A stretch of 64,000 bases of DNA, taken from positions 62,001-126,000 of the forward strand of contig NW_024704812.1 of the NCBI RefSeq assembly GCF_018977255.1. The letters run 5' to 3'. Positions within the stretch are counted from its first letter, which is position 1. Every line of letters starts with the position of its first letter. This document shows, one piece after another, positions 8,489 through 54,580 of this stretch. This DNA comes from Callorhinchus milii (lineage: Eukaryota). The position numbers and the translations under genes were made by a program. Below the pieces are notes generated by a model. That model saw only the letters and a program-made list of their open reading frames with translations, was not told where the DNA came from and did not search any database.

Positions 8489-9360
8489 AGTCACAAAATC
8501 TCCCTCCTTCCCACAGTTGGCCTGGGAACAATATGTCACATATCACTTGCCCACTCACATTAACTGTGCGTCAATCAGGGCCATCTGAAAGGAAAAACAT
8601 TAAACTGTGACATAGATAGATAAATGGATGGCAGATTAGAGCATGAGAGAAACAGTCTTTTTACAAGTAGCACAGGCTTCTGACTGTTTGTGGGTCCCTC
8701 CTGTGCGCAATCGGCTGCCGCGTTTCACCCATAAAATATACAGTCAATTCACTTTACAGTATATTCTGTGAAGTGATTTGAGACGTTCTTTTTGGAGGGG
8801 TTAATACTTCCCGGAAAGTGATCCGGCAATCGACTAACGGGTTCCTACTTACTTTTAGGTAAACAGAGGCGCGTGTGTGTGTGTGGGGGGGGGGGGGGGG
8901 AATTGGGGGGGGGGGAATTGGGGGCACGTGTGGGATTGGAATAAGATTTCGCCCTGACCCGCCCAGGAATCAAACACAAGTCCTCTCGCTTGATAAGGCG
9001 ATGTATCAAATGCAAGGATTATTGTGATGATGATCATGATTATGACCATTAGTTTTGTTATCATTATTTTTATTATTATTGTTCTGATTCTTATCCTTAT
9101 TTTTATTATTACAGCTCAGGTCACGTGAATTTAAGGTGATCTGTGGATCATGGAGTTCAAAGCGAGTCGGGGTTCCTGCTCCTGGTCCCTAACGCTCCCT
9201 CTAGTGCTCAGGTATGTGTGTTACAGTCTGGTGGAGAGAGATTAGGTTTGTCTGTGGGGCCCTCTACAGTCGAGTGGCCGATTGACACTCAAATGGTGAT
9301 GAGATCTTTAACCTGAACAGGCAGATAGTTTAACATCTCATCCAAACAACTGCTCTTCCA
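8489..9360 (-). pseudogene. Orphan relic: C1-C2 intron plus 5' third of a C2 exon, cut off by L2 sequence
   Basis: tttcag| at 8584 followed by [21 protein letters not shown]...; 9110-9360 matches the intronic block at 15535-15790, 28855-29090, 44185-44420 and 57225-57450. Confidence 0.75.
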
Positions 9361-11836: not shown

Positions 11837-13143
11837 TTACTTCCCGGGGCCATTACGACGTAAATTGTGATAAATATCTTTTTGGTGCTTTCCAAGGTTC
11901 TGAAACACAATGAATACAGGACAGATCATTACTATCAACACATTTACACAGAGCCTTTCATGTCAGGAGGACGTCCCAAGGAGCTGGACAGTCAGGGATT
12001 TGGATCTGAGCTGTAGGTTGGGATCAGGAGGGGTGGAGGGCGGGGAGGGTGGGGGGTGGGAGGGTGACCAAAGGAGCAGTTGATTGAAGACGAAAGTCTT
12101 GAGACAGGCCTTGAAGGAGGTGAGGGAGGGAGTGAGATGGAAGGATTGTGAGATGGAGTTCCAGAGGATGGGGCAGAGTGACTGAACGCCCGACCGATGG
12201 TGGGGCAGGCGAGGTGGGGGATGTGAAGCAGGCCGGAGGCAGAGGGGTGAGGAGGTCGCAGAGGTAGTGGGGAGCAACGTCATGGAGGGCTTTGAAGGTG
12301 AAGACCAGGATCTTGAACTGTATGCTGTGTGTGATGGGAAGCAGTGGAGTCGGGAAGGGTGGGGCTGATGGGGGGCAGAGCCTGGGGTGGGAGAGGACAG
12401 AGCTGCAGAATTAGTTCTGGATGATCTGCAGTTTGTAGAGGGAGGCGTTGGGAAGGCCGACAAGCAGGGAGTGGGCAAAGTCAAGCCTGTATGTGGTGAA
12501 CACATGGATGAGGGTCTCGGTGGCCTGTGGTGAGAGACAGTGGCGGAGACGGGCAATATGGTGGAGGTGGGGAAGGCATAGCAGGTCATGGCATGGATGA
12601 GGGGATGAAGGACAGTTTAGGGTCGTAAAGAACAGAGGTGGGACAGCAAGAGACTGAGCCGGGCTGACACACTGTCCATGTCAGCCATTTGTTTCCTCAC
12701 CATGTAAGGGCCTGAATCCTTCTGGGAGACATTGGCAGAGGAAGCCTAAAATATAACCAAACACAGTTTAGCTATTCAGTAGCAATGTCGTTAGCAGTAA
12801 ATAATAATAACCCTTGCACTTCATACAGCAGCTTATCATGTCATATCTTCGAGACGTCTCAAAGTGCTTCACAGGATACACCGTAAAGTGTAGTGACTGT
12901 GTTTTTATCATAATAATAATAATCCTTGCATTTGATACAGCACCTTATCACGACTTTGAGTCATATCAAAGGGGAGCCAATTGCCTACGGTCCTTGTCCG
13001 GGAATCGAAACCGGATTCTCTCGCTTGCGAGCCGAGTGCTCTAACCACTGAGCTACAGGACTGCACAGAACTTACTCTGACATCAATGTTCTCGTAGTGT
13101 GGTTCCCACTCTGTCTCTCGCTGTGCACTGCGGGGTGTCTTGG
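11837..13143 (-). CDS. g2 cytoplasmic exons Cyt1-3 (AKTPRSAQRETEWEPHYENIDVR / [15 protein letters not shown] / [20 protein letters not shown])
   Basis: Exons of 68, 45 and 63 nt with ag/gt boundaries; homologous to the g3-g5 tails; frame preserved. Confidence 0.7.
11960..12640 (-). mobile_element. L2-type LINE fragment in the Cyt2-Cyt3 intron (shared by g2-g5)
   Basis: Degenerate RT C-terminal motifs; homologues at 23960-24520, 38810-39370 and 51560-52110. Confidence 0.7.
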
Positions 13144-16100
13144 CTAGAAAATAAACAACAACTTGTTTATTCAAAGGCGCAGCCTCTGATGGTGGGATAG
13201 AGGGAACGAGGGATAAGCAGGAGGCCAGAGGGGGGGTTGAGCAGGTCGGAGAGGTAGGGAGGTACTAGGGCATGAAGGGGTTTGAAGTCACGTCAAATTG
13301 GAAGAAGTTCTCTCCCATTGCGTTAGTGACATGGCATTGATATGTGCCCTGATCGGTTGCCTGGAATTTACTGATGAGCAGTTTAGAGAAGGTTAGTCCT
13401 GAGGTGATGATGAACTTGCCGTCAGAGCCAGTGATGGAGTTGTCTTCCTTCGACCATGTAAAGTGTGCGGGCAGCAGGCCAGGGTCTGACACCCGCACTG
13501 TGTCTGTCAGTGACACGTCTAAGGTCACATCTGCCTCCTTCCCCACTTCCACCTGAGGCTCAGACCCTGACGCTCTCTGGGGTTTATCTGTGTAACAGCA
13601 CAGACAGCGTTCAGCAAAACAGCAACACAGTCACCCCAACAGTTAGTAGGAATAATAATAATCCTCCCGTTTGATACAGCGCCTTATCACGCCATCGAGA
13701 CATCTTAAATCCTATCTAAAGACCTTCCTCTTCGACCAACCGCACCTTCAGCCACCCTCCCACCCCCCAACCCACCCCCCTGCCCTCCACCCCTCCTGAC
13801 CCCAACTCCCAGCTCAGGTCCAAAAACCCTGACTGTGCAGCGTCCCGGGACATGTTTGCGACGTGAAGGGCGCTATACAAGTGTAATTTGTCATCGTTGT
13901 TGTTGTTCAGCCCTCAAGTCCTCACCAATGACTATAGAGCATTGACTGTCAGAGACAACATGGCGTCCAACACATGTGAAGATCTCTCGGGAGCTGAGCT
14001 GATCCTTTGTGATGGTGACATTCCCCTCGTTTGTCGCATTGACAATCGTCTGTCCGACCTTCAGCTGAAGGACAGAGTCTGGCACCCCACCAGCCCAGGA
14101 GCACATCAACACCAATGCTGTTCCTTTATCTGCTGCTCCGCATGTGATCTGCTGTGTGGGAGCCCCTTGAACAAGGCAAAGACAAACAGTCCAGTTATTG
14201 GCTCCACCTTGAGTTGTCCCCACCCTCGCCCGGCTCCACTCGCTCCCCATCCCTCAGAGGATACTGTTCAAGATCCTGGTGCTCAGCTTCAAAGCCCTCC
14301 ATTGCTTCACTTCTCCCTCCCTACCTCTATGGCCTCCTAACCCCCGACCAACCTGTCCGCTCCCTCCGCTCAGCGGGTGCTGCACTGCTCCATGTCCCCT
14401 CCCGCCTGCCCCACCGTCAGTGGTCGGGCCTTATGTCTGTGTTTGGGCCTTAGGCCTCTCTGCCCCCACCCTCTGAAACTTCCACAATCCCTCTGCCATG
14501 CCGCCCTCGCCTCCTTTATAACCCATCTCAAGATTTCCCTCTTCGACAGACTGTGCCGTCGGTCAACCTCCTACACCCATCTCCCTGCCCTCCAACCCAC
14601 CTGATAGCAACCCCCAGCTCAGGTGTGGGTCCCTGACTGTCCAGTGCCTTGGGACATCCTCCTGACGTGAAAGCCACTGTGTAAATGTCATGTGTTGTTA
14701 TTTAGACAGTGCCAATTTTGACTGAGATCTAACTCACTGTACACGAGGATTGAAACCTTCTCCGTGCGGCTAATCGTGGTGTAATCGCTCTCCACATTGC
14801 AAGTGTAATCCCCGCTGTTGTGGAACGTGAGGCTCTCTATAGGCAGCTGTGAGGTGTTGCCGGCAATGACTGTGGTGTTATGTGTCCACCTGTAGTTGCC
14901 CTCTGGGAAACATTTCGTCTGACAGTTGAGGGTCATAAATCTCCCTCCTTCCCACAGTACTGTCCTGGGAAGAAGCTGTCACATAGCTCCAGCCCGATCA
15001 CTTCAACTGTGGGTGGATCAGGGCCATCTGAAAGAATAAGCATTAAACTGTGACATAGATAGATAAATGGATGGCAGATGATAGTGTGAGAGAAACAGCC
15101 TTTTTACATGTATCACAGATCTCTGGCTGTTTGTGGGACGCTGCTGTGCGCAATTGGCTGCCGAGTTTTGCCCATAAAATCTACAGTCAATTCACTTGAC
15201 AGTATATTCTGTGAAGCGATTTGAGACGAGGTAAGGTGTTTTTTTTGGAGGGGTTAATACCTCCCGAAAAGTGATCTGCCAATCGACTAACAAGGGTTCC
15301 CACTTACTGCTCCGTAAGTAATGTGGTGTGTGTGTGTGTGGGTGTGCTTGTGGGGTGTGGGGCGCGGATGTGGGGTGTGGGTGGAGTAAGGAAAGTTGCT
15401 TAAGGTTTCGCTCTGACCCGCCCGGGAATTGAACCCAGGTCCTCTCTTGCTTGATTGTCAAATGCAAGGATGATTCTTATTCTTATGATGATAACTATGA
15501 TCATTATTATTGTTATTATCATTATTATTATTGCAGCTCAGGTCGCGTGAGGCTGAATTTAAGGTGATCTGTGGGTCATGGAGTTTAAAGCGAGTCAGGG
15601 TTCCTGTTCCTGGTCCCTAAACTCCCTCTCGGGCTCAAGTGTGGGTGTTGCAGTCTGGTGGGGAGATTAGGTTTGTCTGTGGTGCCCTCTACAGTCAAGT
15701 GGCCGATTGACACTCAAATAGTGATGGGATCTTTAACCTGAACAGGCAGATAGTTTAACGTCTCATCCAAACAACGGCTCTTCCAATGACAATAATAACT
15801 AGCTCCGTGGTTAGAGGCATTCCTTATTTGTGTTTGATTCCCAGCAGGGGGTGAATGCTTGGGCAAGTTTCCTTACTCCACACGCCTGATAATAATCCTT
15901 CAAGAAAATAAATTGGTGACTTCAATCTACGGCTGTTTGTGGGACGTTGCTGTGCGCAATTGTCTGCCGCGTTTTACCCACAAATATACAGTCAATTCAC
16001 TTTACAGTATATTCTGTGAAGCGTTTGAGTTGTCTAAAACACATGAAAAGCACTGTATCAAATGCAAGGATTATTATATTAGTTATAGAGCAAAACGTCG

Positions 16101-19026
16101 GCCAAGTTTCCGTACTCCCAAACACACCCTCTGTTTACTGAGCAGTAATTAGGAACCCTTAATTAGTCGATTGGTGGATCGCTAACTGGGAATCAAACCA
16201 AAGAGCTCTCACTTGCGAGGTGAGGGCTCCAACCACTACAGGACCCCACTGTTTGTTCCTCCATCCACAGCATCAAACCCCAATGTAGAATATTCCAGCA
16301 TTGCATTGGAGCTTCAGTCTGGACTACATGAGTTCCAAGTACTGACGTGAGGCCACAACCTTCTGACTTATAGAGAGCTGAGCCAGGCTGGAACAAGTAG
16401 GGATACACGTGGGCCAACTGCACTGTCCTGTTCAGCTCACGTTGATCTGGTTTTAACACCACAGCAAATATACTCACAAGTTATCACCAGCTTCACTGGT
16501 TTGCTGCTGTCACTGCCCACCAGGTTACTGGCCGTGCAGATAAACCCTCCACTGTCGCTCCTGTGTACGGGGCTGATTGTCAGAGTGCTATTATCTGCAG
16601 ACAGTGTGTAACGTGGGGTTACAGGTAACGGGTGTCCATCCAGTGCCCAGGAATAGGTGGGGAACGATCCCATCGCTGTACATCTCAGTGTCACTGTGTC
16701 TTCATTCTCGATAAATATCTCCTTGTCTGGACTCAGGCTGATGCTCACATTGGACACCAGGGCTGTAAGATAACGCGTTTCATTTCATTCTGAAACTTTA
16801 CTGACCTCACACTTTATTTCTGACACTGATAATAATAATTCAATGAAGTGAATTGACTGTATATTTTCTGGGCGCAACACGGCAGCCAATTGTGCACAGA
16901 GTCTCCCACAGTCGTGGATTGAGTGAGGAAAATATAATTGCTTCTTTAACAAGGACTGGGTGGCCTTTTTTGTGGTGGTGGGGGGAGAGAGAGACACACA
17001 CACAGAAACACAGAGAGCCACATACACACACACACAGACTCAGAGAGAGACTCACACACTCATAGAGAAACACACACTCAGAGACAGAGAGAGAGACTCA
17101 CACTCACAGATAGACAGACACAGAGAGAGACACACACTCTCACAGATACAGAGAGGGATACATTTGTATAGCGCCTTTCACGTCGGGAGGATGTCCCATA
17201 GATAGAGACACACTTACAGTCACGTAATCCACAACTGTTTGTGGGACACTACTGTGCGCAACGGGCTGCTGCGTTTCGCCCATAAATATACAGAATTCAC
17301 TTTACAGTGTATTCTGTGAAGCGCTTTGAGATGTCCAGAAGATGTGATACTGTGCTATATCAAATGCAAGGATTATTTATTATTTATTATTACAGATACA
17401 GAGACACACATACAGGCACATCCACAAACACACAGAGGGAGACACGGACACACAACAACACACAGATACTCGCAACAGAGAGGTACACAGAGACACACAG
17501 ACACTCTCAAACAGAGAGATACACAAACACACAGAGACACATAGACACTCACGAACAAAGAGATACACAGGCACTCACGAATGCATAAAGAGGCATACAC
17601 ACACTCATACACACATGCACAGAGACACACACTCACAAACTGAGAGANNNNNNNNNNNNNNNNNNNNNNNNNNNNNNNNNNNNNNNNNNNNNNNNNNNNN
17701 NNNNNNNNNNNNNNNNNNNNNNNNNNNNNNNNNNNNNNNNNNNNNNNNNNNNNNNNNNNNNNNNNNNNNNNNNNNNNCAGAGACACACAAACACTCACAT
17801 TCCCTCTCTCAAATTCACACACAAACAGACAGACATACTCAAACTCACACAGCAGACTTATATACACACACACAGACAGACACTCTCTCTCTTACCTTCA
17901 CACACTCTCACACACACAGACAGACACACACACAGACACTCACACTCCCTCTCTCACCTTTACACACAAACTCACACAGAGACAGACATACACAACCTCA
18001 CACACAGACCTATACACACATTCTCACACAGAAACTCACACACATACAGTCACACACACACATACAAACACAATACTCACTCTCAGTCATACATACACAG
18101 ACACACCCTCATACACACACCACCACACACACACTCTCACACACAGACAATCACACACAATCACAATAGTAGTGAATCCAAGGATGCGGCCCGCGGGCCA
18201 CCAGTTGACCGTCCTGCTCTAACCAACACCCTACAGGACTCCACAGGGCTTGAAACACAACCTGCTGATTGAAGTGCTGCCGACTGAGTCAGGCCGACAC
18301 CAAGGTCTGCCCTTTGACAAACCCCCAGGCACAAAGTTGATTAATTGATCAGTTTCAGAGTGAGTTTGTCGCCGGTCTGTGACCATCACAAGATCTCAGT
18401 CTCTCTCTGTATCCAACACATTAATTCAGTTCCACCGAGAAACCTGATATGTGGAACTGTTTAAATGAAATCTATTTCAGGAGAAATTAATGATATTTAG
18501 TGAAATCTCTGTACTGTGTAATAATAATAATAATAATAATCCTTGCATTTGATATAGCGCTTTTCACGTCGGGAGGATGTCCCAAAGCGCTTCGAGTGTA
18601 AACTAATGTGTAAACTAATCACCCCAGCCCTCACACACACTGAACTCTGTACTCCCACCACCCCAGCCCTCGCCAGGCCCCACTGGCTCCCTATCACACA
18701 CTAAACCCTGTACCCCATCACCCCTGCCCTCGCCAGGCCCCACTGGCTCCCTATCACACCCTTCTGTTTGTCCTTCGCTCCCTCTGCTCCATCATTGGTG
18801 ACCGTACCTTCAGCCACTATGCCCTGAAGCTCTCCCTATCAACCCCTCCATCTCGCCCCCTCACTCCCCACCTTCAAATCACGCCTATTTAATTGTATTT
18901 ACCGTCACCTCCCCCCTCCCTCTCCCACCGGCTCGGGGTCAGACTCTGCCCCTGTCCAGCGCTCTCGGACTCTACCCTATGTGAGGAATGTGGTGTAAAT
19001 GCAAGTTGTTGTTGTTGTTTACTCAC

Positions 19027-19350
19027 TGTGAACACGCAGTTGTAAAGCTGCTGTGGCTGATCCGTGGTATAATTCAAACACAATCACTGAGTACGAACCG
19101 GAATCAGCCGGAGTCACTGTGTCCAGACGTAGAGTGGCATTGTTGGGGTAAAGCTCAGCCCGACCCTGGTAGTCTCCAAAATATTTCACTGTTGTTCCCT
19201 GTGCTGTTGCGATTGTGGAGCTGGTGTTGGCTTTCCATGATATGCTAAAACTTCCCTGTTCACTGGGCATTACCAGGAAGTACACAGATTGTCCGGCTGT
19301 GGCTTCTATGTGACTCTCAGTAACGGTCAGACTGAAAGCTCCCACCTGCT
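19027..19350 (-). CDS. g2 IgV exon
   Basis: ORF 19019..19372. 324 nt between the ttacag| acceptor and |gtgagt donor; open frame, phase 1-1. Confidence 0.9.
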
Positions 19351-20396
19351 CTGTAACACATAACACACACAACAGTCAATCAATCACAGTGTAATAATAA
19401 TATTAATATTAATCCTTGCATTTGATCTAACGTCTTATCACGTCTTTGAGATGTCTCAAAGCGCTTCACAGAATCTACTGTAAGTTGAATTCACTGTATA
19501 TTTTGTGGGCAAAATTTTGAAGGAATTATTACTCCCAAAAAAAGCGATCCGCCAATCAACTAACAACCGGGTTCCTACTTCCTGCTGGTAAACAGAGGTG
19601 TGTGTGGAGTAAGGAAACTTGCCCAACAATTTGCTCTCCCGGGAATCAAACCAGGTCTCTCACTTGCGAGGCAAGTTCTTTAACCGCTGAGCTACAGGAC
19701 TTTACAATTCAGAACTCTCTCAACTATTCAGTGAGTGAGTAGTAAACTTATTGAACAGGATCCCGATGGAGACAGACGGTGGAAGCAGAAAATGTCATTT
19801 GTTTCAAGATCAACTTTGATAGATTTTTACTGGAAAATAATATCTTGGGATACAGTATATAGACACACACAGACACACAGGAGTTACACACACACACAGA
19901 GACATACACACACAGACACACAGACATAGAGAAGGAATCACACACACACAGAGACACACACACACATAGACAGAGACACACAATCACAGAGAGAGACACA
20001 TACAGAGAGACAGAGACACACACACTGAGAGACAGACACACACACACACAGACAGAGACACACACTGAGAGATAGACACACACATACACAGAGTGAGAGA
20101 GACACACAGTATATAGTTTGTGACACGACATGTCTAGCGACTGCCAGGACGGTGGGAGATGAACGAGATGGACCTTTGCTTATGTTGTTACCAGTAACTC
20201 ACTCAGATTAGTGACCAGAATGAGCAGAGCAGCCACCAACATCCTCGCGGCTGGAAACCACCACATATACACGTTAGGGAGAGAGACAGAGACAAACTGA
20301 ATATGGGCTGTCACCTGAACGCAGGGCAGAGTCTGCTGTTAATCATTACTGTTACTGTAGGGAGACCCTGACACTGGCTCTAATGGCACCCGGTGC

Positions 20397-23836: not shown

Positions 23837-25003
23837 CTACTTCCTGGTGCCATTACGACGTAAATTGTGATAAATATCTTTTTGGTGCTTTCCAAGGTCC
23901 TGAAACACAATGCAGATCGGACAGACCATTACTAACAACAACATTTTATACGGAACCTTTCACATCAGGAGGACGTCCCAAGGACCTGGAGAGTCAGGGA
24001 TTTGGATCTGAGCTGTGGGTTGGGATCAGGACGGGGTGGATGGTGGCGAGGGAGGGGTTAGGAAGGTGACCAGGTTGAGGAGGAAAGTCTTGTGACAGGC
24101 CTTGAAGGAGGTGAGGGAGTGATGAGGTGGGATGGAGGGACTGTGGGATGGAGTTCCAGAGGGTGGGGCAGAGTAACTGAAGGCCCAACCGATGGTGGGG
24201 CAGGTGAGGCGGGGGATGTGAAGCAGGCCGGAGCCCGCTGAGCAGAGAGAGCGGACAGGTTGTTAGGGGGTATGGGGAGCTGCAGAGTTAGTTCTGGATG
24301 ATCTGCAGTTTGTAGAGGGAGGCGTTGGGGAGGCCGACAAGCAGGGAGTGGGCAAAGTCAAGCCTGTTTGTGGTGAACACATGGATGAGGGCCTCGGTGG
24401 CCTGCGGTGAGAGACAGTGGCGGAGCCGGGCAATATGGCGGAGGTGGGGAAGGCATAGCAGGTCATGGTATGGATGAGGGGATGAAGGACAGTTTAGGGT
24501 CGTAAAGGACAGAGGTGGGACAGCAAGAGACTGAGCCGGGCTGACACACTGTCCGTGTCAGCCATTTGTTTCCTCACCATGTAAGGGCCTGAATCCTTCT
24601 GGGAGACATTGGCAGAGGAAGCCTAAAATATAACCAAACACAGTTTAGCTATTCATTAGCAATGTCGTTAGCAGTAAATAATAATAACCATTGCATTTCA
24701 TACAGTGCCTTATCACGTCTTCATAACATCTCAAAGCGCTTCACAGGATACACGGTAAAGAGTAGTGACTGTGTGGTTTCATAATAATAATTGTTGCATT
24801 TGATACAGTGCCTTATCACGTCTTTGAGTCGTATCAAAGGGGAGCCAATTGCCTAAGGTTTTGCCCTGTCCGGGAAACAAAACCGGATCCTCTCGCTTGA
24901 GAGGCGAGGACTCTAACCACTGAGCTACAGGACTGCACAGGACTTACTCTGACATCAATGGTCTCGTAGTATGGTTCACCCTCTGTCTCTTGCTGTGTTT
25001 TGG
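23837..25003 (-). CDS. g3 cytoplasmic exons Cyt1-3 encoding YETI plus the ITAM YMDL-x7-YHNL
   Basis: Exons of 56 nt (phase 1-0), 45 nt (0-0) and 63 nt (0-stop TAG), each with a pyrimidine-rich ag acceptor; the first two end in gtaagt/gtgagg donors. Confidence 0.85.
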
Positions 25004-28000
25004 CTGGAAAATAAACAACAACTTGTTTATTCAAAGGCACAGCCTCTGATGGTGGGATGGAGGGAACGAGGGACAAATAGGAGGCCGGTGTGGGGGCGGT
25101 TGGGGGTGAGCAGGTCGGAGAGGTAGGGAGGTGCCAGGGTATGAAGGGGTTTGAAAACGGGTGAGAGGATCTTGAAATCGTAGAAAATCTTGAAAATAAA
25201 CAAGAGTTTGGTGCTGAACCGGTGAACTTGGAGAGAAACGGAGAGGGAGGGACTGACAGAGAGAGAGAAAGTCAAAGGAGGAATGATTGATAGCGAGAGG
25301 GGGAGATGGATGGATAGAGACTGACAGGGAGTGAGATGGAGGGTGATAGAGAGAGAGGGGTAAAAACTGATAGAAAAGAGTGGGTGAAATGGAGAGGGAG
25401 AGACTGAGAGTGATGGAGGGTGATAGAGAGAAGGGGTAGAGACTGATAGAAAAGAGAGGGTGAAATGGAGGGGGAGAGGCTGATAGAGAGAGAGAGACAA
25501 AGTGGGAGAGACTGATAGTGAAAGAGAGTGAGATGGAGGGGCTAGAGACAGATAGAGAGAGACGGAGGGGTAGAGACTGACAGAGAGAGAGGACAGTGAG
25601 AGGGTGAGTGGCTGAGGGGGGTCTGGGCTGGTATATAAACAACAGAACATGAAGGTGAAAGGTTTTCCTGTGTATATACGGCCTCACCTTCCTTACGTTT
25701 CCTGTAAACGTACAACACAGCGAGTGTTGCAATGACCACCACAGCCACAGCCCCCACTATTGTCCCCACTATCAGGGCCACATTCACTGCGGAGAGAAAC
25801 ACCTTCACTGTCTCTCTATTAGATTATACTCTCGTAACATAGAGACCACAGCACAGACCTCATGTAAATCACATCAATCCTCGCATTTGATACAGCGCCT
25901 TATCACGTCGTTGTAAAATGTAGTAACTGTGTATTTTTTGGGCGGAACACAGCAGCCAATTGCGCACAGCGGTGACCCACAAACAGTTGTGGATTGATTG
26001 ACCAGATTTTTTGTTTTTTTGGAGGATTATGACCCCAGAAAGTGAACCGTCAATTGACTAACAGCGGGTTCCTACCTACTGCTGATAAACAGAGGTGCAC
26101 ATCTGTGTGTGTATGTGTGTCTGCGTGTGTGTGTTTGTGTGTGTGTGTGTCTGTGGGTGTTGTCTGCGGTGGGGTCTATATGTCTGTCTGTGAGTTTGTG
26201 TGTGTCTGTGACTGTGTAAGTGTGTGTGTGTGTGTGTGTGTCTGTGTGTGTGTCAACATATCATAACTTACCTCCGCCTTTCAAAGTCACGTCAAATTGG
26301 AAGAAGTTCTCTCCCATTGCGTTAGTGACATGGCATTGATATGTGCCCTGATCGGTTGCCTGGAATTTACTGATGAGCAGTTTAGAGAAGGTCGGTCCTG
26401 AGGTGATGTTGAACTTGCCGTCAGAGCCAGTGATGGAGTTGTCTTCCTTCGACCATGTAAAGTGTGCGGGCAGCAGGCCAGGGTCTGACACCCGCACTGT
26501 GTCTGTCAGTGACACGTCTAAGGTCACATCTGCCTCCTTCCCCACTTCCACCTGAGGCTCAGACCCTGACGCTCTCTGGGGTTTATCTGTGTAACAGCAC
26601 AGATGGTGTTCAGCAAAACAGCAACACAGTCACCCCAACAGTCAGTAGGAATAATAATAATCCTCCCGTTTGATACAGCGCCTTATCACGCCATCGAGAC
26701 ATCTTAAATCCCATCTAAAGACCTTCCTCTTCGACCAACCGCACCTTCAGCCACCCTCCCACCCCCAACCACCACCACCCCCTGCCCTCCACCCTCCTGA
26801 CCCCAACTCCTAGCTCAGGTCCAAAACCCAGACTATGCAGCGTCCCGGACGTGTTTGCGACGTGAAGGGCGCTTATACAAGTGTAATTTGTCATCGTTGT
26901 TGTTGTTCAGCCCTCAAGTCCTCACCAATGACTATAGAGCATTGACTGTCAGAGACAATATGGCGTCCAACACATGTGAAGATCTCTCGGGAGCTGAGCT
27001 GATCCTTTGTGATGGTGACATTCCCCTCGTTTGTCGCATTGACAATCGTCTGTCCAACCTTCAGCTGAAGGACAGAGTCTGCACCCCACCACCCCAGGAG
27101 CACATCACACCAATGCTGTTCCTTTATCTGGCTGCTCCGCATGTGATCTGCTGTGTGGGAGCCCCTTGAACAAGGCAAAGACAAACCAGTCCGTTATTGG
27201 CTCCACCTTGAGTTGTCCCCACCCTCGCCCGGCTCCACTGGCTCCCAATCCCTCAGAGGATACAGTTCAAGATCCTGGTGCTCAGCTTTAAAGCCCTCCA
27301 TGGCATCACTCCTCCCTCCCTACCTCTGTGACCTCCTAATCCCTGACCACCGGTCCGCTCCCTCTGCTTAGCGGGCTCCGGCCTGCTCCATGTTCCCCGC
27401 CCGCCCATCCCCTTAAGCCTCTCTGCCCCCACCCTCTGAAACTCCCACAATCCCTCTGCCACGCCTCCCTCACCTCCTTCAAAACCTATCTCAAGATCCT
27501 CCTCTTCGACAGACCGTGCTTTCAGTCACCCTCCTACACCCATCTCCCTGCCCTCCAACCCTCCTGATAGCAACCCCAGCTCAGATGTGGGTCCCTGACT
27601 GTCCAGCGCCTTGAGACATCCTCCTGACGTGAAAGCCACTGTGTAAATGCCATGTGTTGTTATTTAGACAGTGCCAATTTTGACTGAGATCTAACTCACT
27701 GTACACGAGGATTGAAACCTTCTCCGGTGTGGCTAATCGTGGTGTAATCATTCTTCACATTGCAAGTGTAATCCCCGCTGTTGTTGAACGTGAGGCTCTC
27801 TATAGGCAGCTGTGAGGTGTTGCCGGCAATGACTGTGGTGTTATGCGTCCACCTGTAGTTACACTCTGGGAACATTTCGTCTGACAGTTGAGCGTCACTA
27901 AATCTCCCTCCTTCCCACAGTACTGTCCTGGGACCAAACTGTCACATATCACCTGCCACTCATATATACTGTGGGTGGATCAGGGCCATCTGAAGAAAAA

Positions 28001-31000
28001 CATTAAGTGATGACATAGATAGATAAATGGATGGCAGATGATAGTGTGAGAGAAACAGCCTTTTTACATGTATCACAGGACTCCGACTGTTTGTGGGTCC
28101 CTCCTGTGCGCAATTGGCTTGCCGTCCCCCGACCCACCCACCCCACCATTGGCGGGAGAGCCTTCAGCCACTCTGCCCCAACCTCTGTAATCCTATCCCC
28201 CAGTCATTCCGCTTCACGCCCTCCTTAGCCTCCTTCAAGTCACGCCTCAAGACCCTCCTCTTCGACCATGCCATCGGCCATCCCCCTTCCCCGCCCCTCC
28301 TTCTCCCCCCGTGACTCCAGCTCGGGTCTGAAATGCTGTCATGTCCAGTGCCTTGGGACATCCTCCCGATGTGAAAGACGCTATACAAATGTAATCCTGT
28401 TGTTGTTGTTGTGTTTCACCCATAAAATATACAGTCAATTCACTTTACAGTATATTCTGTGAAGTGATTTGAGACGTGAGGAGGTGTTTTTTTTGGAGGG
28501 GTTAATACATTCGGAAAAGTGATCGGCAATCGACTAACAAGGGTTTCCGCTTACTGTTAGGTAAACAACAAAATACAACAACAATAATATTACATTTATA
28601 GAGCGTCCTTAACGTCGGGAGGACGTCCCAAGACATTGGCGCTGCTAAACAGTGGGGTGTATGTGTGTGGGGGGGTGGGGGTGGGGGCGAGTGTTGGGTG
28701 GAGTAATGTACCTGCCTAAGCTTTCGTCCTGACCCGCCCGGGAATCAAACCCAGGTCCTCTCGCTTGATAAGGCGATATATCAAGTGCAAGAATGATTAT
28801 TATTCTGATGATCATGACTATGATCATTATTATTGTTATTATCTTTACTGTTATTGCAGCTCAGGTCACGTGAGGCTGACTTTGGGTCATGGAGTTTAAA
28901 GCGAGTCGGGGTTCCTGCTCCTGGTCCCTAAACTCCCTCTCGGGCTCAGGTGTGTGTGTTGCAGTCTAGTGAGGAGATTAGGTTTGTCTGTGGGGCCCTC
29001 TACAGTCAAGTGGCCGATTGACACTCAGATAGTGATGGGATCTTTAACCTGAACAGGCAGATAGTTTAACGTCTCATCCAAACAGCGGCTCTTCAATGAT
29101 AATAACAATAGTGGAGTCCTGTTGCTCAATGGTTAGAGCATTTGCCTCGTAAGTGAACTTGAGTTCAATTCCATCAGGGTCGAATGCTTGGGCAAGTTTC
29201 CTTACTCCACACGCCTGATAATAAACCCTCCAGAAAGAAACTAATAGTAAATTGGTCACTTCAATCCACGGCTGTTTTGGGACGACGCTGTGTGCAATTG
29301 TGTTTCACCCACAAATATACAGTCAATTCACTTTACAATATATTCTGTGAAGCATTTTGAGATGTCTCAAAGACGTAAAGAGCGGGCATCAAATGAAAGG
29401 TTTATTATATTATTTATAGGGCAAAACATTGGGCAAGTTTCCTTACTCCGCACGCCTCTGTTTACCTCGCAGTGTGTGGGGACCCAGTTGTTAGTCGACT
29501 GATGGATCGCTTTTCCGAGGGTAAAAATTCCTTCAAAAAATAATATTAATGAATTGGTCCCTGAATCCCCAACTGTTTGTGGGACACTGCTGTGTGCAAT
29601 TGGTTGACATTTTATGGAGTGGTTATTACCTCCAGAAAGTGATCCGGCAATGAACTGACAAGTAGGTTCATACTTACTGCAGGTCAGCAGAGCCATGTCT
29701 ATGTGTGTTTCTATGAGTGGAGGACTATATGAGTTCCAAGTGCTGACGTGAGGCTTGAACCCACAACCTTCTGACTTATAGAGAGCTGAGCCAGGCTGGA
29801 ACAAGTAGGGATATACGTGGGCCAACTGCACTGTCCTGTTCAGCTCACGTTGATCTGGTTTTAACACAACAGCAAATATACTCACAGTTATCACCAGCTT
29901 CACTGGTTTGCTGCTGTCACTGTTCACCGGGTTACTGGCCGCGCAGATAAACCCTCCACTGTCGTTCCTGTGTACGGGGCTGATTGTCAGAGTGCTATTA
30001 GCTGCAGACAGTGTGTAACGTGGGGTTACAGGTAACGGGTGTCCATCCAGTGCCCAGGAATAGGTGGGGAACAATCCCATCACTGTACACCTCAATGTCG
30101 TTGTGTCTTTATTCTCGATAAATATCTCCTTGTCTGGACTCAGGCTGATGCTCACATTGGACAGCAGAGCTGTAAGATACGGATTTACTTTACTTAACAC
30201 AAAGCTGTTCTGCTTCAGTTCAAGATCCTGGTCCTCACCTTCAATGTCCTCTACAACCTCACTCCTCTCTCCTTACCTCCGCTCCCTCTGCTCAGCGGGC
30301 TCCGGCCTGCTTCATGCCCCCGCCCACCTGCCCCACCATCAGCGGTTGGGCCTTCAGCCTCTCTGCCCCAATCCACGACTGTTTGTGGGACACTGCTGTG
30401 TGCAATTGGCTGCAGAGTTTCGCCCACAAAATAGACCGGCAATTCACTTTACAGTATATCGTCCCAAAATACATCACTTTGCACTTCTCCACATTAAACT
30501 TCATCATGTCTGCCCATGTTACCAGTCTGTCTATGTCCTCTTGCAGTCTGTTACTCTCCTCCTCACTGTTTACTACTTTTCTTAGCTTAGTATCATGTGT
30601 GTGGCTCCTGATCTCACACACACTAAACTCTGTACCCCAGTCCTGCCCAGGCTCCAAACTTGGCAATTGTGCTCTCTATACCCAAGTCCAGGCCACCTTA
30701 AAGACCCATTTCAAGGCCTTCCTCTTCGACCGGCCATGCCTCCAGTCATCCTTCTATTCCAACCCTACCCGCCCTCCACCCCTCCTTATCCCAACCCCCA
30801 CCTCGAGTGCGGATCCCTGACTATCCAGTGCCTTGGGACGTCGTCCTGATATGAAAGCCACTGTTGTTGTTTACACCATGACATTTTTGACTGAGATAAC
30901 TAACTCACTGTACACGAGGATTGAAACCTTCTCCGTGCGGCTAATCGTGGTGTAATCATTCTTCACATTGCAAGTGTAATCCCCGCTGTTGTTGAACGTG

Positions 31001-34000
31001 AGGCTCTCTATAGGCAGCTGTGAGGTGTTGCCGGCAATGACTGTGGTTTATGTGTCCACCTGTAGTTACACTCTGGGAAACATTTCGTCTGACAGTTGAG
31101 GGTCATCAAATCTCCCTCCTTCCCACAGTACTGTCCTGGGACCAAACTGTCACATATCACCTGCCCACTCACAATAAAGGTGAGTGGATCAGGGCCATCT
31201 GAAAGAAAAAGCATTAAACTATGACACAGATAGATAAATGGGATGGCAGATGATAGTGTGAGAGAAACAGTCTTTTTACATGTATCACAGACCTCTGACT
31301 GTTTGTGGGTCGCTGCTGTGTGCAATTGGCTGCTGCGTTTTGCTCATAACATATACAGTCAATTCACTTTACAGTATATTCTGTGAAGCGTTTCAGTCGT
31401 CCAGAAGATGTGAAAAGCACTGTTATCAAATGCAAGGATTATTATATTATTGATAGAGCAAAACGTCGGCCAAGTTTCTCTCCTCCCAAACACACCCTCT
31501 GTTTACTGAGCAGTAATTAGGAACCCGGTTATTAGTCGATTGGTGAGAATCAAACCAAAGTCCTCCCACTTGCGAGGTGAGGGCTCCAACCACTACAGGA
31601 CCCCACTGTTTGTTCCTCTATTCACAGCATCAAACCCCAATGTAGAATATTCCAGCATTGCATTGGAGCTTCAGTCTGGACTACATGAGTTCCAAGTACT
31701 GACGTGAACCCACAACCTTCTGACTTATAGAGAGCTGAGCCAGCTGAACAAGTAGGGATATACGTGGGCCAACTGCACTGTCCTGTTCAGCCTCACGTTG
31801 ATCTGGTTTTAACACAACAGCAAATATACTCACAAGTTATCACCAGCTTCACTGGTTTAACTGCTGTCACTGCCCACCAGGTGACTGGCCGTGCAGATAA
31901 ACCCTCCACTGTCGCTCCTGTGTACGGGGTGATTGTCAGAGTGCTATTATCTGCAGACAGTGTGTAACGTGGGGTTACAGGTAACGGTGTCCATCCAGTG
32001 CCCAGGAATAGGTGGGGAACGATCCCATTGCTGTACATCTTAGTGTCACTGTGTCTTTATTCTCGATAAATATCTCCTTGTCTGGACTCAGACTGATGCT
32101 CACATTGGACACCGGAGCTGTAAGATAACGCGTTTCATTTCATTCAGAAACTTGTTCAGATTCACTTCACTGACACAAACTTGTTCGGAGTCACTTTGCT
32201 GAACCCTACACTTTATTTCTGACGCTGTTTGTTATGATTCACTGTTTATTCAGGTCTCAGTCTGGCTCATTTGGTAGCACAATGTTATGGTTTAAAGCCC
32301 CACTCTTGGAGCTCACAGTCCAGGTTTATTGGCTTAATGAATGAAATGAAATGGGCCCGGGGGCCGGATGCGGCCCGTGGGCCACCAGTTGGCCCACCCT
32401 GCTCTCCCGATGCTCTGAAGCCAGGGTGGCTGCCGTGGGCCGGATTCCCCTATTTGTCAAAGATCCACGAGCCACATCCAACCTGAGGCCATTTCCACTC
32501 CCTCCCTCCCTCCCTCCCTGGTCAGCGGCAGGAGCTGATGGTTGGGAAGACCCAGCGACCAGAGCCTTTACTGCAGTCTTCAAGGAGAGCAAGCAAATAC
32601 GTCGCTGTTCCTCACACTCCCCCTCCCTCTCCCCCCCTCCCTCTCTCTGCCCCCACTCTTTTTCACTCCCCTCTCTCCCCCCTCTCTTTCTCCCCCCCCC
32701 TCCCTTGCTCCCAAGATCCACTGGCACTTGCCTGGCTTTCCTATCACACACTAAACTCTGTAACCCATCACCCCCGCCCTCACCAGACCCCACTGGCTCC
32801 TTAATCACACACTAAACTCTGTACCCCATCACCTGAGCCCTCGCCAGGCCCCACTGGGTCCCTATCACACACTATACTCTGTACCCCATCACCTCCGCCC
32901 TCGCCCCCGCCCTCGCCAGGCCCCACTGGCTCCCTATCACACACTAAACTCTGTACCCCATCACCCCCGCCCTCGCCAGGCCCCACTGGCTCCCTATCAC
33001 ACACTAAACTCTGTACCCCATCACCCCCGCCCTCGCCAGGCCCCACTGGCTCCCTATCACACACTAAACTCTGTACCCCATCACCCCCGCCCTCGCCAGG
33101 CTCCACTGTTTCCGTATCACCAAACAGATCGATTTTGAGATCATCTCACTCGTTTTCAAATCCCTTCATGCCATGGTACTGCCCTAAACTCTCCGACCTG
33201 CTCACCCACCCACTGCACTCTCGGTGCCTCCTCTTGGCTGGTTCCATCCTTGTCTTGTTTTTCCCTCGTCCCCTCCACTCCACCATCAATGGCTGTGTCT
33301 TCAGCCACTGCGTCACTTTCTCCCTCAATCCCAACGCCTCGCCCCTCCCTCCCCACCTTCAAATCGCACCTAAAGACCTTCCATTTTGATCGTGTTTACA
33401 GTCACCGCCTTCCTCTCCCTCTCCCCCCCCGGGTCGGGGTCAGACTCGGCCCCTGCAAAGTGCTCCGGGACACTCCGCGTGAAGGGCGCTGTTGTTGTTA
33501 CTCACTGTGAACACGCAGTTGTAAATCTGCTGAGGCTGCTCCGAGATTAAGTCAAACACAGACACTGAGTACGAACCGGAATCAGCCGGAGTCACTGGTG
33601 TCCAGACGTAGAGTGGCATTGTTGGGGTAAGCTCAGCCCGACCCTGGTAGTCTCCATAGTACTTCACTGCTGTTCCTTTGCTGATGCGATTGTGGAGCTG
33701 GTGTGACTTTCCATATTATACTAAAATTTCCCAGTTTCACTGGGCATTACCAGGAAGTACACAGATAGTCCGGCTGTGGCTTCTATCTGACTCTCAGTGA
33801 CGGTCAGACTGAAAGCTCCCACCTGCTCTGTAATACAAAACACACACAACAGTCAATCACCAAATATCACAATGTAATAATAATATTCATCCTTGCATTT
33901 GATCTCGCGTCTTATCACGTCTTTGAGATGTCTCAAAGCGCTTCACAGAATTACTGTAAGGTGAATTGACTATATTTGTGGACAAAAGTTTTGAAGGAAT

Positions 34001-38685: not shown

Positions 38686-39855
38686 CTACTTCCTGGTGCC
38701 ATTACGACGTAAATTGTGATAAATATCTTTTTGGTGCTTTCCAAGGTCCTGAAACACAATGCAGATCGGACAGACCATTACCAACAACAACATTTTACAC
38801 TGAACCTTTCACATCAGGAGGACGTCCCAAGGACCTGGAGAGTCAGGGATTTGGATCTGAGCTGTGGGTTGGGATCAGGAGAGGGTGGATAGTGGCGATG
38901 TAGGCGTTAGGAAGGTGACCAGGTTGAGGAGGAAAGTCTTGTGACAGGCCTTGAAGGAGGTGAGGGAGTGATGGGGTGGGATGGAGGGACTGTGGGATGG
39001 AGTTCCAGAGGGTGGTGCAGAGTAACTGAAGGCCCAACCGATGGTGGGGCAGGTGAGGCGGGGGATGTGAAGCAGGCCGGAGCCCGCTGAGCAGAGAGAG
39101 CGGACAGGTTGTTAGGGGGTATGGGGAGCTGCAGAGTTAGTTCTGGATGATCTGCAGTTTGTAGAGGGAGGCGTTGGGGAGGCCGACAAGCAGGGAGGGG
39201 GCAAAGTCAAGCCTGTTTGTGGTGAACACATGGATGAGGGTCTCGGTGGCCTGCGGTGAGAGACAGTGGCGGAGCCGGACAATATGGTGGAGGTGGGGAT
39301 GGCATAGCAGGTCATGGCATGGATGAGGGGATGAAGGACAGTTTAGGGTTGTAAAGGACAGAGGTGGGACAGCAAGAGACTGAGCCGGGCTGACACACTG
39401 TCCGTGTCAGCCATTTGTTTCCTCACCATGTAAGGGCCTGAATCCTTCTGGGAGACATTGGCAGAGGAAGCCTAAAATATAACCAAACACAGTTTAGCTA
39501 CTCATTAGCAATGTTGTTAGCAGTAAATAATAATAACCCTTGCACTTCATACAGTGCCTTATCACGTCTTCATAACATCTCAAAGCGCTTCACAGGATAC
39601 ACGGTAAAGAGTAGTGACTGTGTGGTTTCATAATAATAATAATCGTTGCATTTGATACAGTGCCTTATCACGTCTTTGAGTCGTATCAAAGGGGAGCCAA
39701 TTGCCTAAGGTTTTGCCCTGTCCGGGAAACAAAACCGGATCCTCTCGCTTGAGAGGCGAGGACTCTAACCACTGAGCTACAGGACTGCACAGGACTTACT
39801 CTGACATCAATGGTCTCGTAGTGTGGTTCACCCTCTGTCTCTTGCTGTGTTTTGG
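38686..39855 (-). CDS. g4 cytoplasmic exons Cyt1-3 (HYETI plus ITAM)
   Basis: Exons of 56, 45 and 63 nt; open and in phase. Confidence 0.85.
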
Positions 39856-40103
39856 CTGGAAAATAAACAACAACTTGTTTATTCAAAGGCACAGCCTCTG
39901 ATGGTGGGATGGAGGGAACGAGGGACAAATAGGAGGCCGGTGTGGGGCGGTGGGGGTGAGCAGGTCGGAGAGGTAGGGAGGTGCCAGGGCATGAAGGGGT
40001 TTGAAAACGAGTGAGAGGATCTTGAAATCGTAGAAAATGTTGAAAATCTACAAGAGTTTGGTGCTGAACCGGTGAACTTGGAGAGAAATGGAGAGGGAGG
40101 GAC

Positions 40104-40149
<46 letters not shown>

Positions 40150-43100
40150 GCAGTGAGAGATAGGGTTAAAGCCTGACAGAAAGACAAAGAGGGAGCGATT
40201 GAAAGAGAGAGGTGGAGATGGATGGATAGAGACTGATAGAGAGTGAGATGGAGGGTGATAGAGAGGGGGGGATAGAGGCTGATAGAAAGGAGATGGTGAA
40301 ATGGAGTGGGAGAGACTGATAGAGAGAGAGAGAGAGATAGAGGGGGAGAGACTGATGGAGGAAGAGTGAGACGGAGAGGGTAGAGACTGATTGAGCTTGT
40401 GACTGAGGTGGATAGAGACTAATGGAGGGAGTGTGAGACAGAAGGGAAGAGACTGATAGAGAGACATGAAGGGGGAGAGACTGATAGTGAGAGAGAGTGA
40501 GACGGAGGGGGAGAGACTGATAGAGAGAGACAAGGGGGAGAGACTGATAGTGAAAGAGAGCGAGACGGAGGGGATAGAGACAGATAGAGTGAGACGGAGG
40601 GGTAGAGACTGACAGAGAGAGAGGACAGTGAGAGGGTGAGTGGCTGAGGGGGTCTGGGCTGGTATATAAACAACAGAACATGAAGGTGAAAGGTTTTCCT
40701 GTGTATATACGGCCTCACCTTCCTTACGTTTCCTGTAAACGTACACCACAGCGAGTGTTGCAATGACCACCACAGCCACAGCCCCCACTATTGTCCCCAC
40801 TATCAGGGCCACATTCACTGCGGAGAGAAACACCTTCACTGTCTCTCTATTAGATTATACTCTCGTAACATAGAGACCACAGCACAGACCTCATGAACAT
40901 CATATCAATCCTCGCATTTGATACAGTGCCTTATCACGTCGTTGTAAAGTGTAGTAACTGTGTATTTTGTGGGCGGAACACGGCAGCCAATTGCACACAG
41001 CGGTGACCCACAAACAGTCGTGGATTGATTGACCAGATTTTTTGTTTTTTTGGAGGGATTATGACCCCCGGAAAGTGAACCGTCAATTGACTGACAAGTG
41101 GCTTCGTACCTTCTGCTGGTGAACAGAGGTGTGTGCATGTGTCTCTATGTGTGTCTGTGTGTGTCTGTGTGTGTGTGTCTGTCTGTGTGTGTACTGACAT
41201 ATCATAACTTACCTTCGCCTTTCAAAGTCACGTCAAATTGGAAGAAGTTCTCTCCCATTGCGTTAGTGACACGGCATTGATATGTGCCCTGATCGGTTGC
41301 CTGGAATTTACTGATGAGCAGTTTAGAGAAGGTTAGTCCTGAGGTGATGTTGAACTTGCCGTCAGAGCCAGTGATGGAGTTGTCTTCCTTCGACCATGTA
41401 AAGTGTGCGGGCAGCAGGCCAGGGTCTGACACCCGCACTGTGTCTGTCAGTGACACGTCTAAGGTCACATCTGCCTCCTTCCCCACTTCCACCTGAGGCT
41501 CAGACCCTGACGCTCTCTGGGGTTTATCTGTGTAACAGCACAGACGGCGTTCAGCAAAACAGTAACACAGTCACCCCAACAGTCAATAGGAATAATAATA
41601 ATCCTCCCGTTTGATACAGCGCCTTATCACGCCATCGAGACGTCTCAAATCCCATCTAAAGACCTTCCTCTTCGACCAACCGCACCTTCAGCCACCCTCC
41701 CACCCCAAAACCCACCCCCCTGCCCTCCACCCCTCCTGACCCCAACTCCCAGCTCAGGTCCAAAAACCCAGACTGTGCAGCGTCCCGGGACGTGTTTGCG
41801 ACGTGAAGAGTGCTATACAAGTGTAATTTGTTATTGTCGCTGCTGTTCAGCCCTCAAGTCCTCACCAATGACTATAGAGCATTGACTGTCAGAGACAACA
41901 TGGCGTCCAACACATGTGAAGATCTCTCGGGAGCTGAGCTGATCCTTTGTGATGGTGACATTCCCCTCGTTTGTCGCATTGACAATCGTCTGTCCGACCT
42001 TCAGCTGAAGGACAGAGTCTGGCACCCCACCAGCCCAGGAGCACATCAACCCCACTGCTGTTCCTTTATCCGCTGCTCCGCATGTGATCTGCTGTGTGGG
42101 AGTCCCTTGAACAAGGCAAAGACAAACAGTCCAGTTATTGGCTCCACCTTGAGTTGTCCCCACCCTCGCCCGGCTCCACTGGCTCCCCATCCCTCAGAGG
42201 ATACAGTTCAAGATCCTGGTGCTCAGCTTTAAAGCCCTCCATGGCCTCACTCCTCTGTCCCTACCTCTGTGACCTCCTAACCCCTGACCAAGCTGTCCAC
42301 TCCCTCCGCTCATTAGGCTCCAGCCTACTCCATGTCCCTTCCCGGCCCACTCCATCATCGGCGTTCTGCCCTAATTTGCCCCATCCTATGAAACTCCCAT
42401 AACCGCTCCGCCTCGCCCTCTCCCTCGCCTTCTTCAAACCTGTGCGATCTACTGTGCCTTCGTCACCCTCCTACACCCATCTCCCTGCCCTCCAACCCTC
42501 CTGATAGCAACCCCCAGCTCAGGTGTGGGTCCCTGACTGTCCAGCGCCTTGGGACATCCTCCTGACGTGAAAGCCACTGTGTAAATGCCATGTGTTGTTA
42601 TTTAGACAGTGCCAACTTTGACTGAGATCTAACTCACTGTACACGAGGATTGAAACCTTCTCTGTGCGGCTAATCGTGGTGTAATCATTCTTCACATTGC
42701 AAGTGTAATCCCCGCTGTTGTAGAACGTGAGGCTCTCTATAGGCAGCTGTGAGGTGTTGCCGGCAATGACCGCGGTGTTATGTGTCCACGTGTAGTTACA
42801 CTCTGGGAAACATTTCGTCTGACAGTTGAGGGTCATCAAATCTCCCTCCTTCCCACAGTACTGTCCTGGGAAGAAGCTGTCACATAGCTCCAGCCCGATC
42901 ACTTCAACTGTGGGTGGATCAGGGCCATCTGAAAGAAAAAGCATTAAACTATGACATAGATAGATAAATGGATGGCAGATGATAGTGTGAGAGAAACAGC
43001 CTTTTTACATGTATCACAGGAACCTGGGAATCTTGTTTGACCCTGAACTGTCCTTTCTCCCCCACATCCGCGCCATGACAGCACTGCCTACCGCCACCTC

Positions 43101-54549: not shown

Positions 54550-54580
<31 letters not shown>

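Follow-up and report, generated by a model that had tools for sequence, protein, structure and literature searches.

The 64,000-nt stretch of Callorhinchus milii DNA analysed here (assembly GCA_018977255.1, scaffold MU249885.1:62001-126000, "the window") carries a minus-strand tandem array of CEACAM-like genes, and this report concerns one of them, here called g2, in which a deletion has removed the exon for the transmembrane (TM) segment. The usual plan of a gene in the array is a leader exon, an N-terminal V exon, four immunoglobulin (Ig) exons C1-C2-C3-C4, a TM exon, and three small exons encoding an immunoreceptor tyrosine-based activation motif (ITAM). We compared g2 with 12 other copies, 13 in all, over approximately 198 of the 260 kb of the scaffold; scaffold positions 1-62000 lie outside the compared part, and the array thus holds at least 13 tandem copies. 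Exon boundaries were defined on the intact copy g5. The Ig and TM exons are all of phase 1-1, with lengths that are multiples of 3, and Pfam domains of the Ig_3, I-set or Ig_2 type were found in every ectodomain exon. The scaffold is unplaced, and only array copies lie on it.

Alignment of g2 to g3, g4 and g5 revealed that the TM exon has gone together with the C4 donor, as an earlier note on this DNA had claimed, and that g2 holds no TM-exon homologue. By self-BLAST and alignments, g2 13285-14406 matches g3 26284-27405, g4 41225-42344 and g5 54637-55759 at 96-97% identity, and g2 12400-13286 matches g3 24277-25155 and g4 39126-40005 at 90-91%; from 12875 on, g2 also matches g5 52789-53201. 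Missing from g2 are 1128 bp relative to g3, 1219 bp relative to g4 (the note had estimated about 1.1-1.2 kb for these two) and 1435 bp relative to g5. Along with the TM exon, g2 has lost the final 12 nt of C4, the GTAAGT donor of that exon, a CA microsatellite, a repeat and a CT-rich stretch of intron; its sequence resumes in the intron between TM and cyt1 (the first ITAM exon), some 150 nt short of the cyt1 acceptor. The breakpoints are both in unique sequence outside the repeats, and neither the deletion nor its junction is present in any of the 12 other copies. This is a structural deletion far beyond chance.

The same deletion could be produced by an assembly artefact, a collapse or mis-join in a repeat-rich, unplaced long-read scaffold, with the real g2 still carrying its TM exon. 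The scaffold is noisy, with many 1-bp indels that are mostly changes in homopolymer length, and the missing piece includes microsatellite and low-complexity sequence. However, the breakpoints do not fall in repeats, and the junction peptide FDVTSNPFMP ends four gene models of an earlier annotation, which answers the worry about misassembly that the note had raised. In addition, the 3' flank of g2 has a long divergence history of its own, including an in-frame 12-nt gain in cyt1, and such a history agrees with a separate locus of some age and does not fit two modern copies joined in error. We therefore regard an artefact as very improbable; the deletion is almost certainly not a misassembly.

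The four models were found in the 90%-identity cluster of XP_042201590.1, and all end in FDVTSNPFMP: XP_007882907.1 (508 aa), XP_007882908.1 and XP_007882909.1 (507 aa each), and the UniProt entry A0A4W3GHL9 (349 aa, truncated at the 5' end). XP_007882907.1 consists of a signal peptide, V, C1, C2, C3, C4 and SNPFMP, and its C2 domain is intact (GDLMTLNC, with the Cys present). It equals g2 at 498 of its 508 positions (98%), including g2-specific V residues. Relative to a g2 translation bridged by an X at a frameshift in C2, described below, it shows 9 residue differences plus the frameshift site, and 4 of the 9 are in C2. Judged by their sequences, all four models are the same locus as g2 or an allele of it. 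The secreted protein that had been proposed for g2 is already a public gene model. Presumably these four models derive from the older Sanger/454 assembly.

Beyond the junction, the frame reads GAC GTG ACT / TCA AAC CCC TTC ATG CCC TAG, which translates to FDVT-SNPFMP-stop exactly as the note had read it, and TGG occupies the position of the g2 TAG in all nine other copies that matched the strict pattern. The g2 C-terminus past C4 thus consists of six non-hydrophobic residues, with no hydrophobic tail of the glycosylphosphatidylinositol (GPI) type; a GPI signal would have to be longer and less polar than SNPFMP. Since g2 lacks both its sole TM exon and a GPI-type tail, any product would be soluble, and every processing route is predicted to give a protein without a membrane anchor. 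The nearness of the stop to the junction was considered as a meaningful feature in itself and rejected, as approximately 28% of random junctions reach a stop within 7 codons. Without the TAG, the C4 frame would cross the intron remnant (window 13144-13267) and enter cyt1 in its proper frame, a 1-in-3 coincidence that is no sign of design.

The note had also pointed to an AATAAA downstream of the stop that is shared with the paralogs; it lies 93 nt away. Each of the 13 copies has it in that place, with 20 nt separating it from the cyt1 acceptor. No other poly(A) hexamer comes sooner after the g2 stop, and it is the only minus-strand AWTAAA between 16813 and 10445. The GT/T-rich run that follows it doubles as the polypyrimidine tract of the cyt1 acceptor. 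In g2 this hexamer would likely act as the poly(A) signal. In normal copies (e.g., window 26272-26290), reading through the C4 donor gives G-K-L and then TGA, so that retention of the C4-TM intron would give a soluble form from any copy; the older RefSeq model XP_007885124.1 ends by this read-through. Coordinates of the features are collected in Table 1.

Table 1. Features of g2 and reference exons of g3 and g5, in window positions.
Copy	Feature	Position	Strand	Remarks
g2	Leader (signal-peptide) exon	20203-20266	-	21 residues; identical to residues 1-21 in the public models; GTGAGT donor
g2	V (N-domain) exon	19027-19350	-	324 nt, open, no cysteine, phase 1-1; Pfam I-set/V-set
g2	C1 exon	16478-16762	-	285 nt, intact; Pfam Ig_3 1.4e-15
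g2	C2 exon	14738-15027	-	290 nt vs 291; -1 between 14936 and 14937; TGA 14933-14935
g2	C3 exon	13926-14165	-	240 nt, intact; zero private substitutions
g2	C4 exon, truncated	13287-13587	-	Without last 12 nt and GTAAGT donor; Pfam I-set 1.2e-8
g2	Deletion junction	13285-13286	-	TT microhomology common to the C4 end and the TM-cyt1 intron; from alignments
g2	Read-through codons SNPFMP and TAG	13265-13285	-	TAG at 13265-13267
g2	AATAAA, then GT/T-rich stretch	13166-13171	-	93 nt past TAG; intronic in all paralogs
g2	cyt1 exon	13076-13143	-	Acceptor and donor kept; 68 nt vs 56 nt elsewhere; several private substitutions
g2	cyt2 exon	12701-12745	-	15 residues, identical to paralogs
g2	Last exon	11837-11899	-	20 residues, stop TAA; completes ITAM YMNL-x7-YHNL
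g3	TM exon	25688-25786		99 nt
g5	V exon	61822-62145		
g5	C4 exon	54625-54939		
g5	TM exon	54104-54202		
g5	cyt1 exon	52994-53049		Followed by two micro-exons

The leader, V, C1 and C3 exons of g2 and what is left of C4 are intact, as are their splice sites, and the V exon differs from XP_007882907.1 by one residue. A leader directly upstream of V was sought, and only a short interspersed element (SINE) lies there; the leader was located through the public models. The cytoplasmic exons also keep their splice sites and an open frame, and together they encode a tail of AKTPRSAQRETEWEPHYENIDVR, 15 residues and 20 residues. The 12-nt gain in cyt1 accounts for its greater length, and in the last exon g2 departs from the common paralog sequence by D>N (also found in one other copy), T>P, R>G and TAG>TAA. 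A run of 130 N interrupts the V-C1 intron (window 17648-17777), and in g4 the matching interval contains an additional C1-type exon; a further g2 exon may lie inside this run.

The C2 exon of g2 is broken in the present assembly. It reads GATTT-ATGACC in place of GATTTGATGACC, so that one missing G turns the frame into GDL-TGA; the -1 change and premature TGA that had been noted near 14936 are indeed in the sequence. An identical -1 change is found 176 kb away, in a g4-like copy (L001:17451-17740, scaffold position ~253175) whose TM exon is intact. RefSeq splits that copy into a 350-aa "PSG4-like" protein, XP_042201588.1, ending GKEGDL, and a 143-aa remainder, and its "PSG-like" name is a frameshift artefact. 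Loss of the same non-homopolymer base in two copies makes a random read error unlikely, and the C2 change is probably genuine, spread by duplication or conversion.

Frameshifts on this scaffold nevertheless have to be read against its overall quality. Comparison of g3 with g5 (window 23840-34000 vs 51439-62170) disclosed approximately 98.7% identity by substitutions, with 117 mismatches and 77 gaps, 59 of them of 1 bp, over 9.3 kb, and almost every g3 exon is broken. An indel-to-substitution ratio of ~0.66 is unnatural and looks like an unpolished long-read consensus. RefSeq XP_042201584.1 ("titin-like, partial") follows g3 exon for exon, frameshift junk included, and the sequence of its locus equals the window except for a masked run of N. 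Across the copies, frame-breaking indels affect 5 of 19 C2 exons, 4 of 13 V exons and several tail exons; most are of 1 bp and mostly in homopolymers. This excess of 1-bp indels makes single-base frameshifts here weak evidence. A side observation concerns g5: its cyt2 exon (window 52169-52213) has a 1-bp deletion, GCTTCTCTG vs GCTTCCTCTG, and the RefSeq g5 models nonetheless contain the intact 15-residue peptide. At the nucleotide level, 7 of the 12 differences between XP_007882907.1 and g2 fall in C2, a concentration that suggests either conversion of this exon in one haplotype or its collapse during the old assembly.

To describe the history of g2, we counted private substitutions, defined as positions at which the g2 base is seen in no other copy. 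These amount to 2/1111 in the C1-C4 exons (both in a single Cys codon), 27/1206 in the ectodomain introns, 6/156 in the tail exons and 45/871 in the tail introns. The C1-C4 exons therefore carry 12-fold fewer private changes than the neighbouring introns (Fisher p=2e-6), whereas the tail exons do not differ from the tail introns (p=0.69) and do differ from the C exons (p=7e-5). The tail exons hardly vary among the other 12 copies, and the changes of g2 in these exons are mostly non-synonymous. On the 3' side of the junction g2 differs by 8-10% from every copy, compared with a median of 1.4% among the others. On the 5' side it stays within the family range (C3-C4 intron, 3-9%; C4 exon, 0.3-2%). 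Measured against the nearest sampled copy, the introns beside C3 and C4 diverge by 3-6% and the exons by 0.3-0.4%. A protein search for a gene model of g1, made to see whether the divergent 3' part of g2 stems from an older subfamily, found none.

On its simplest reading, this pattern suggests that the loss of the TM exon is old, and that since the deletion the ITAM exons have been dead weight, cut off from homogenisation, with the ectodomain exons keeping their sequence. Such a history fits a maintained soluble gene, and proof it is not. The contrast between exons and introns, taken alone, was rejected as decisive for purifying selection, given that synonymous sites are equally unchanged.

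A plain pseudogene would account for much of the same pattern. Here the deletion killed g2, short gene-conversion tracts donated by functional neighbours keep overwriting its ectodomain exons, and the C2 -1 change and a Cys loss are decay; we hold this as a tentative alternative of real weight, somewhat short of an even chance. The observations that weigh against a functional soluble gene are best taken together at this point. The open reading frame (ORF) from signal peptide to stop is broken by the C2 frameshift, and the occurrence of that change in a second copy suggests exchange among copies. The conserved C2 Cys codon is GGC (Gly) in g2 (14898-14900), and it encodes Cys in 18/18 other C2 exons. 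No private changes occur at ~200 synonymous sites of C1, C3 and C4, where ~4 are expected, which suggests homogenisation focused on exons more than selection acting only on the protein. Exon-focused gene conversion, possibly from a donor copy in the remaining 62 kb of the scaffold, is a full alternative that could mimic selection, and concerted evolution is known in CEACAM families (PMC7042247). Frame-breaking indels in many array copies would suit decay as well. The public models are open to a similar objection: paralogs may be collapsed in the old assembly, so that its intact C2 may not be that of g2. LKGGGKL, the end of an older model of a normal paralog, results from reading through an intact C4 donor; pipelines close ORFs by intron read-through without downstream exons, and an SNPFMP end in a model is therefore not transcript evidence. 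The current NCBI annotation has no full-length g2 protein and gives g2 only a 260-aa ORF, starting from an ATG just past the frameshift. Finally, the AATAAA is an intronic hexamer common to every paralog.

Several results nonetheless weigh against simple decay. With introns beside C3 and C4 3-6% and exons 0.3-0.4% from the nearest sampled copy, any conversion would need to be confined to the exons or to draw on a copy outside the sample. An intact 508-aa ORF exists in the earlier annotation, the leader, V and ectodomain splice sites are intact despite a drift of 4-10% in the tail, and the unnatural excess of 1-bp indels weakens the evidence from the frameshift. The lesions of g2 amount to the deletion, the C2 -1 change and the Cys loss. 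Neutral drift is confined to the tail exons, a restriction that conversion could explain.

A further possibility is that g2 is transcribed and processed otherwise, by skipping of C4, by use of a cryptic donor GAC/GTGACT at the junction, or by intron retention leading to nonsense-mediated decay (NMD). The exons cyt1, cyt2 and the last exon keep their splice sites and open frame, and the phase 1-1 exons would let C3 join cyt1 in frame; from the ATG past the frameshift, such a C3-cyt1 product would be open and 204 aa long. Products of C4 skipping or of the cryptic donor would lack TM and end in a useless ITAM tail or in a new tail. The NCBI model has 260 aa, compared with 253 aa by simple read-through, and the GAC/GTGACT donor (exon end 13292) spliced to acceptors at 12010 or 12005 gives exactly 260 aa. 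Splice enumeration for the 260-aa product gave only non-unique candidates, and the product was not among the protein-search matches or clusters listed. However, the tail exons evolve like introns, so that no tail-bearing product has been kept by selection, the cryptic donor matches the consensus poorly, and gene models in the array frequently link exons that belong to neighbouring copies. We consider such processing improbable.

The reading that we favour, with confidence about evenly balanced, is a real, old deletion of the TM exon in a soluble-ectodomain gene, of which the haplotype sequenced here is possibly a null allele. Of the soluble five-Ig product put forward in the earlier note, one part stands, namely the absence of a TM or GPI anchor, the neutral decay of the tail and the existence of a public 508-aa model; what tells against it is the frame, which is broken in C2 here, as the note itself had cautioned. 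Accepting this would mean that the copy is a null allele of a soluble-receptor gene, or else that its sequence was mis-polished in part.

According to the favoured reading, the ancestor of g2 would have been an ordinary ITAM-receptor member of the array. A germline deletion of ~1.2 kb, the step visible in the alignments, took away the TM exon together with the C4 donor and most of the intron beyond, and its ends were joined through 2 nt of microhomology. As no 5' splice site now follows the C4 acceptor, C4 would run into the intron remnant as a composite terminal exon, with a stop after the six codons SNPFMP and cleavage at the unmasked AATAAA/GU-rich signal 93 nt further on. Pairing of the C4 acceptor with the poly(A) signal would define a terminal exon of ~440 nt; pairing with the cyt1 donor would instead define a 512-nt internal exon, with a stop upstream of two introns and a transcript prone to NMD. 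The product would be a soluble five-Ig ectodomain bearing a signal peptide, equivalent to the 508-aa protein predicted from the earlier assembly. Thereafter the ITAM exons would drift at the intron rate, and the ectodomain exons would stay paralog-like through selection, gene conversion or both.

A ligand-trapping (decoy) role for g2 is possible by analogy with related receptors. The V domain of g2 is 92% identical to that of the nearest ITAM-bearing copy, with 8 V residues differing. The stronger proposal, that g2 is a long-maintained, expressed soluble trap for ligands or pathogens of the chimaera ITAM receptors, with the frameshifted copy a segregating null or an assembly error, appears unlikely.

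The architecture of the array supports membership of the CEACAM family in the broad sense. The V exon is followed by IgC2-like domains on phase 1-1 exons in a 13-copy tandem cluster, as in CEACAM-type genes. The g2 V domain has no cysteine, and so no canonical intradomain disulfide, and retains the R...D-x-G-x-Y pattern. A PDB search with the g2 N-domain gave weak matches to CEACAM1, CEACAM6 and CEACAM15 (E 9e-4 to 1e-2), and CD276 scored better. HMMER with the g2 C4 exon returned two close relatives, whose clusters are Callorhinchus milii RefSeq proteins. Array proteins bear automatic and mutually inconsistent names (CEACAM-like, CEACAM5-like, PSG4-like, VSIG10-like, hemicentin-like and titin-like), and the nearest relative outside Callorhinchus milii is a sawshark CEACAM5-like protein. 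CEACAMs of cartilaginous fishes receive passing mentions in the literature (PMC13278318, PMC5112662), beyond which no paper on the elephant-shark CEACAM array was found.

Like the secreted type of CEACAM, g2 has an intact leader, no TM exon and no GPI signal; its ORF is interrupted in the present assembly and uninterrupted in the earlier public models of the locus. Secreted CEACAM relatives are known, among them the PSGs, snake CEACAM1L1-3 and secreted Xenopus Ceacams (PMC13278318, PMC5112662, PMC4079198). They share with g2 a signal peptide, an N-type V domain and Ig-C domains without TM or GPI anchor, and they arose from membrane-bound ancestors in fast-evolving tandem clusters, a setting like that of g2 (PMC13278318, PMC5112662, PMC4079198). 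In contrast to them, g2 shows a still-visible, recent-looking exon deletion with relic ITAM exons downstream, and the likeness to PSGs does not imply orthology. The literature on them cautions that mRNA data are needed before a gene lacking a TM segment is termed a soluble CEACAM (PMC13278318; see also PMC5112662 and PMC4079198).

Closest to g2 are the ITAM-bearing receptors of the array itself (e.g., XP_042201590.1), which have the five-Ig ectodomain in common with it and are 92% identical in V and ~99% in C3-C4. In g2 the relic YxxL-x7-YxxL tail is unusable without a TM segment and drifts neutrally. The arrangement resembles CEACAM3-type paired or decoy receptors by analogy. Another analogy is the choice between secreted and membrane mRNA of the Ig heavy chain, where the last ectodomain exon is left unspliced to the TM exon and a stop and poly(A) site lie nearby. 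That choice is regulated, whereas in g2 the 5' splice site and TM exon are gone and the outcome would be constitutive.

Other features of the array were observed in passing. The head of a tRNA-Ala-like SINE (ARAGORN; window 12989-13061, minus strand) lies directly after the cyt1 donor, at the same place in every copy. The introns hold many similar tRNA-derived SINEs with ATT-rich tails, one of them just upstream of each V exon. Between g1 and g2, a lone relic of ~95 nt (window 8490-8584) matches the 5' part of a C2 exon at 85% identity; no other exons lie nearby, and it is probably the debris of a lost copy. RefSeq models in the array can be as long as 25 kb and overlap with one another (L003, L006), apparently by chaining exons of neighbouring copies.

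The scope of the finding is modest, and g2 opens no new kind of biology. Given the 1-bp indels, frameshift calls on this scaffold are unreliable, and a predicted g2 protein has stood uncommented in public databases for years. Should the soluble form be expressed, g2 would be a cartilaginous-fish CEACAM-type receptor made secreted by a single exon deletion, and a data point on how often fast-evolving immune-receptor arrays yield soluble relatives. If, moreover, the unlikely case of a long-maintained trap holds true, the receptor-plus-soluble-decoy logic of CEACAM families would already have been in place in the earliest-branching jawed vertebrates.

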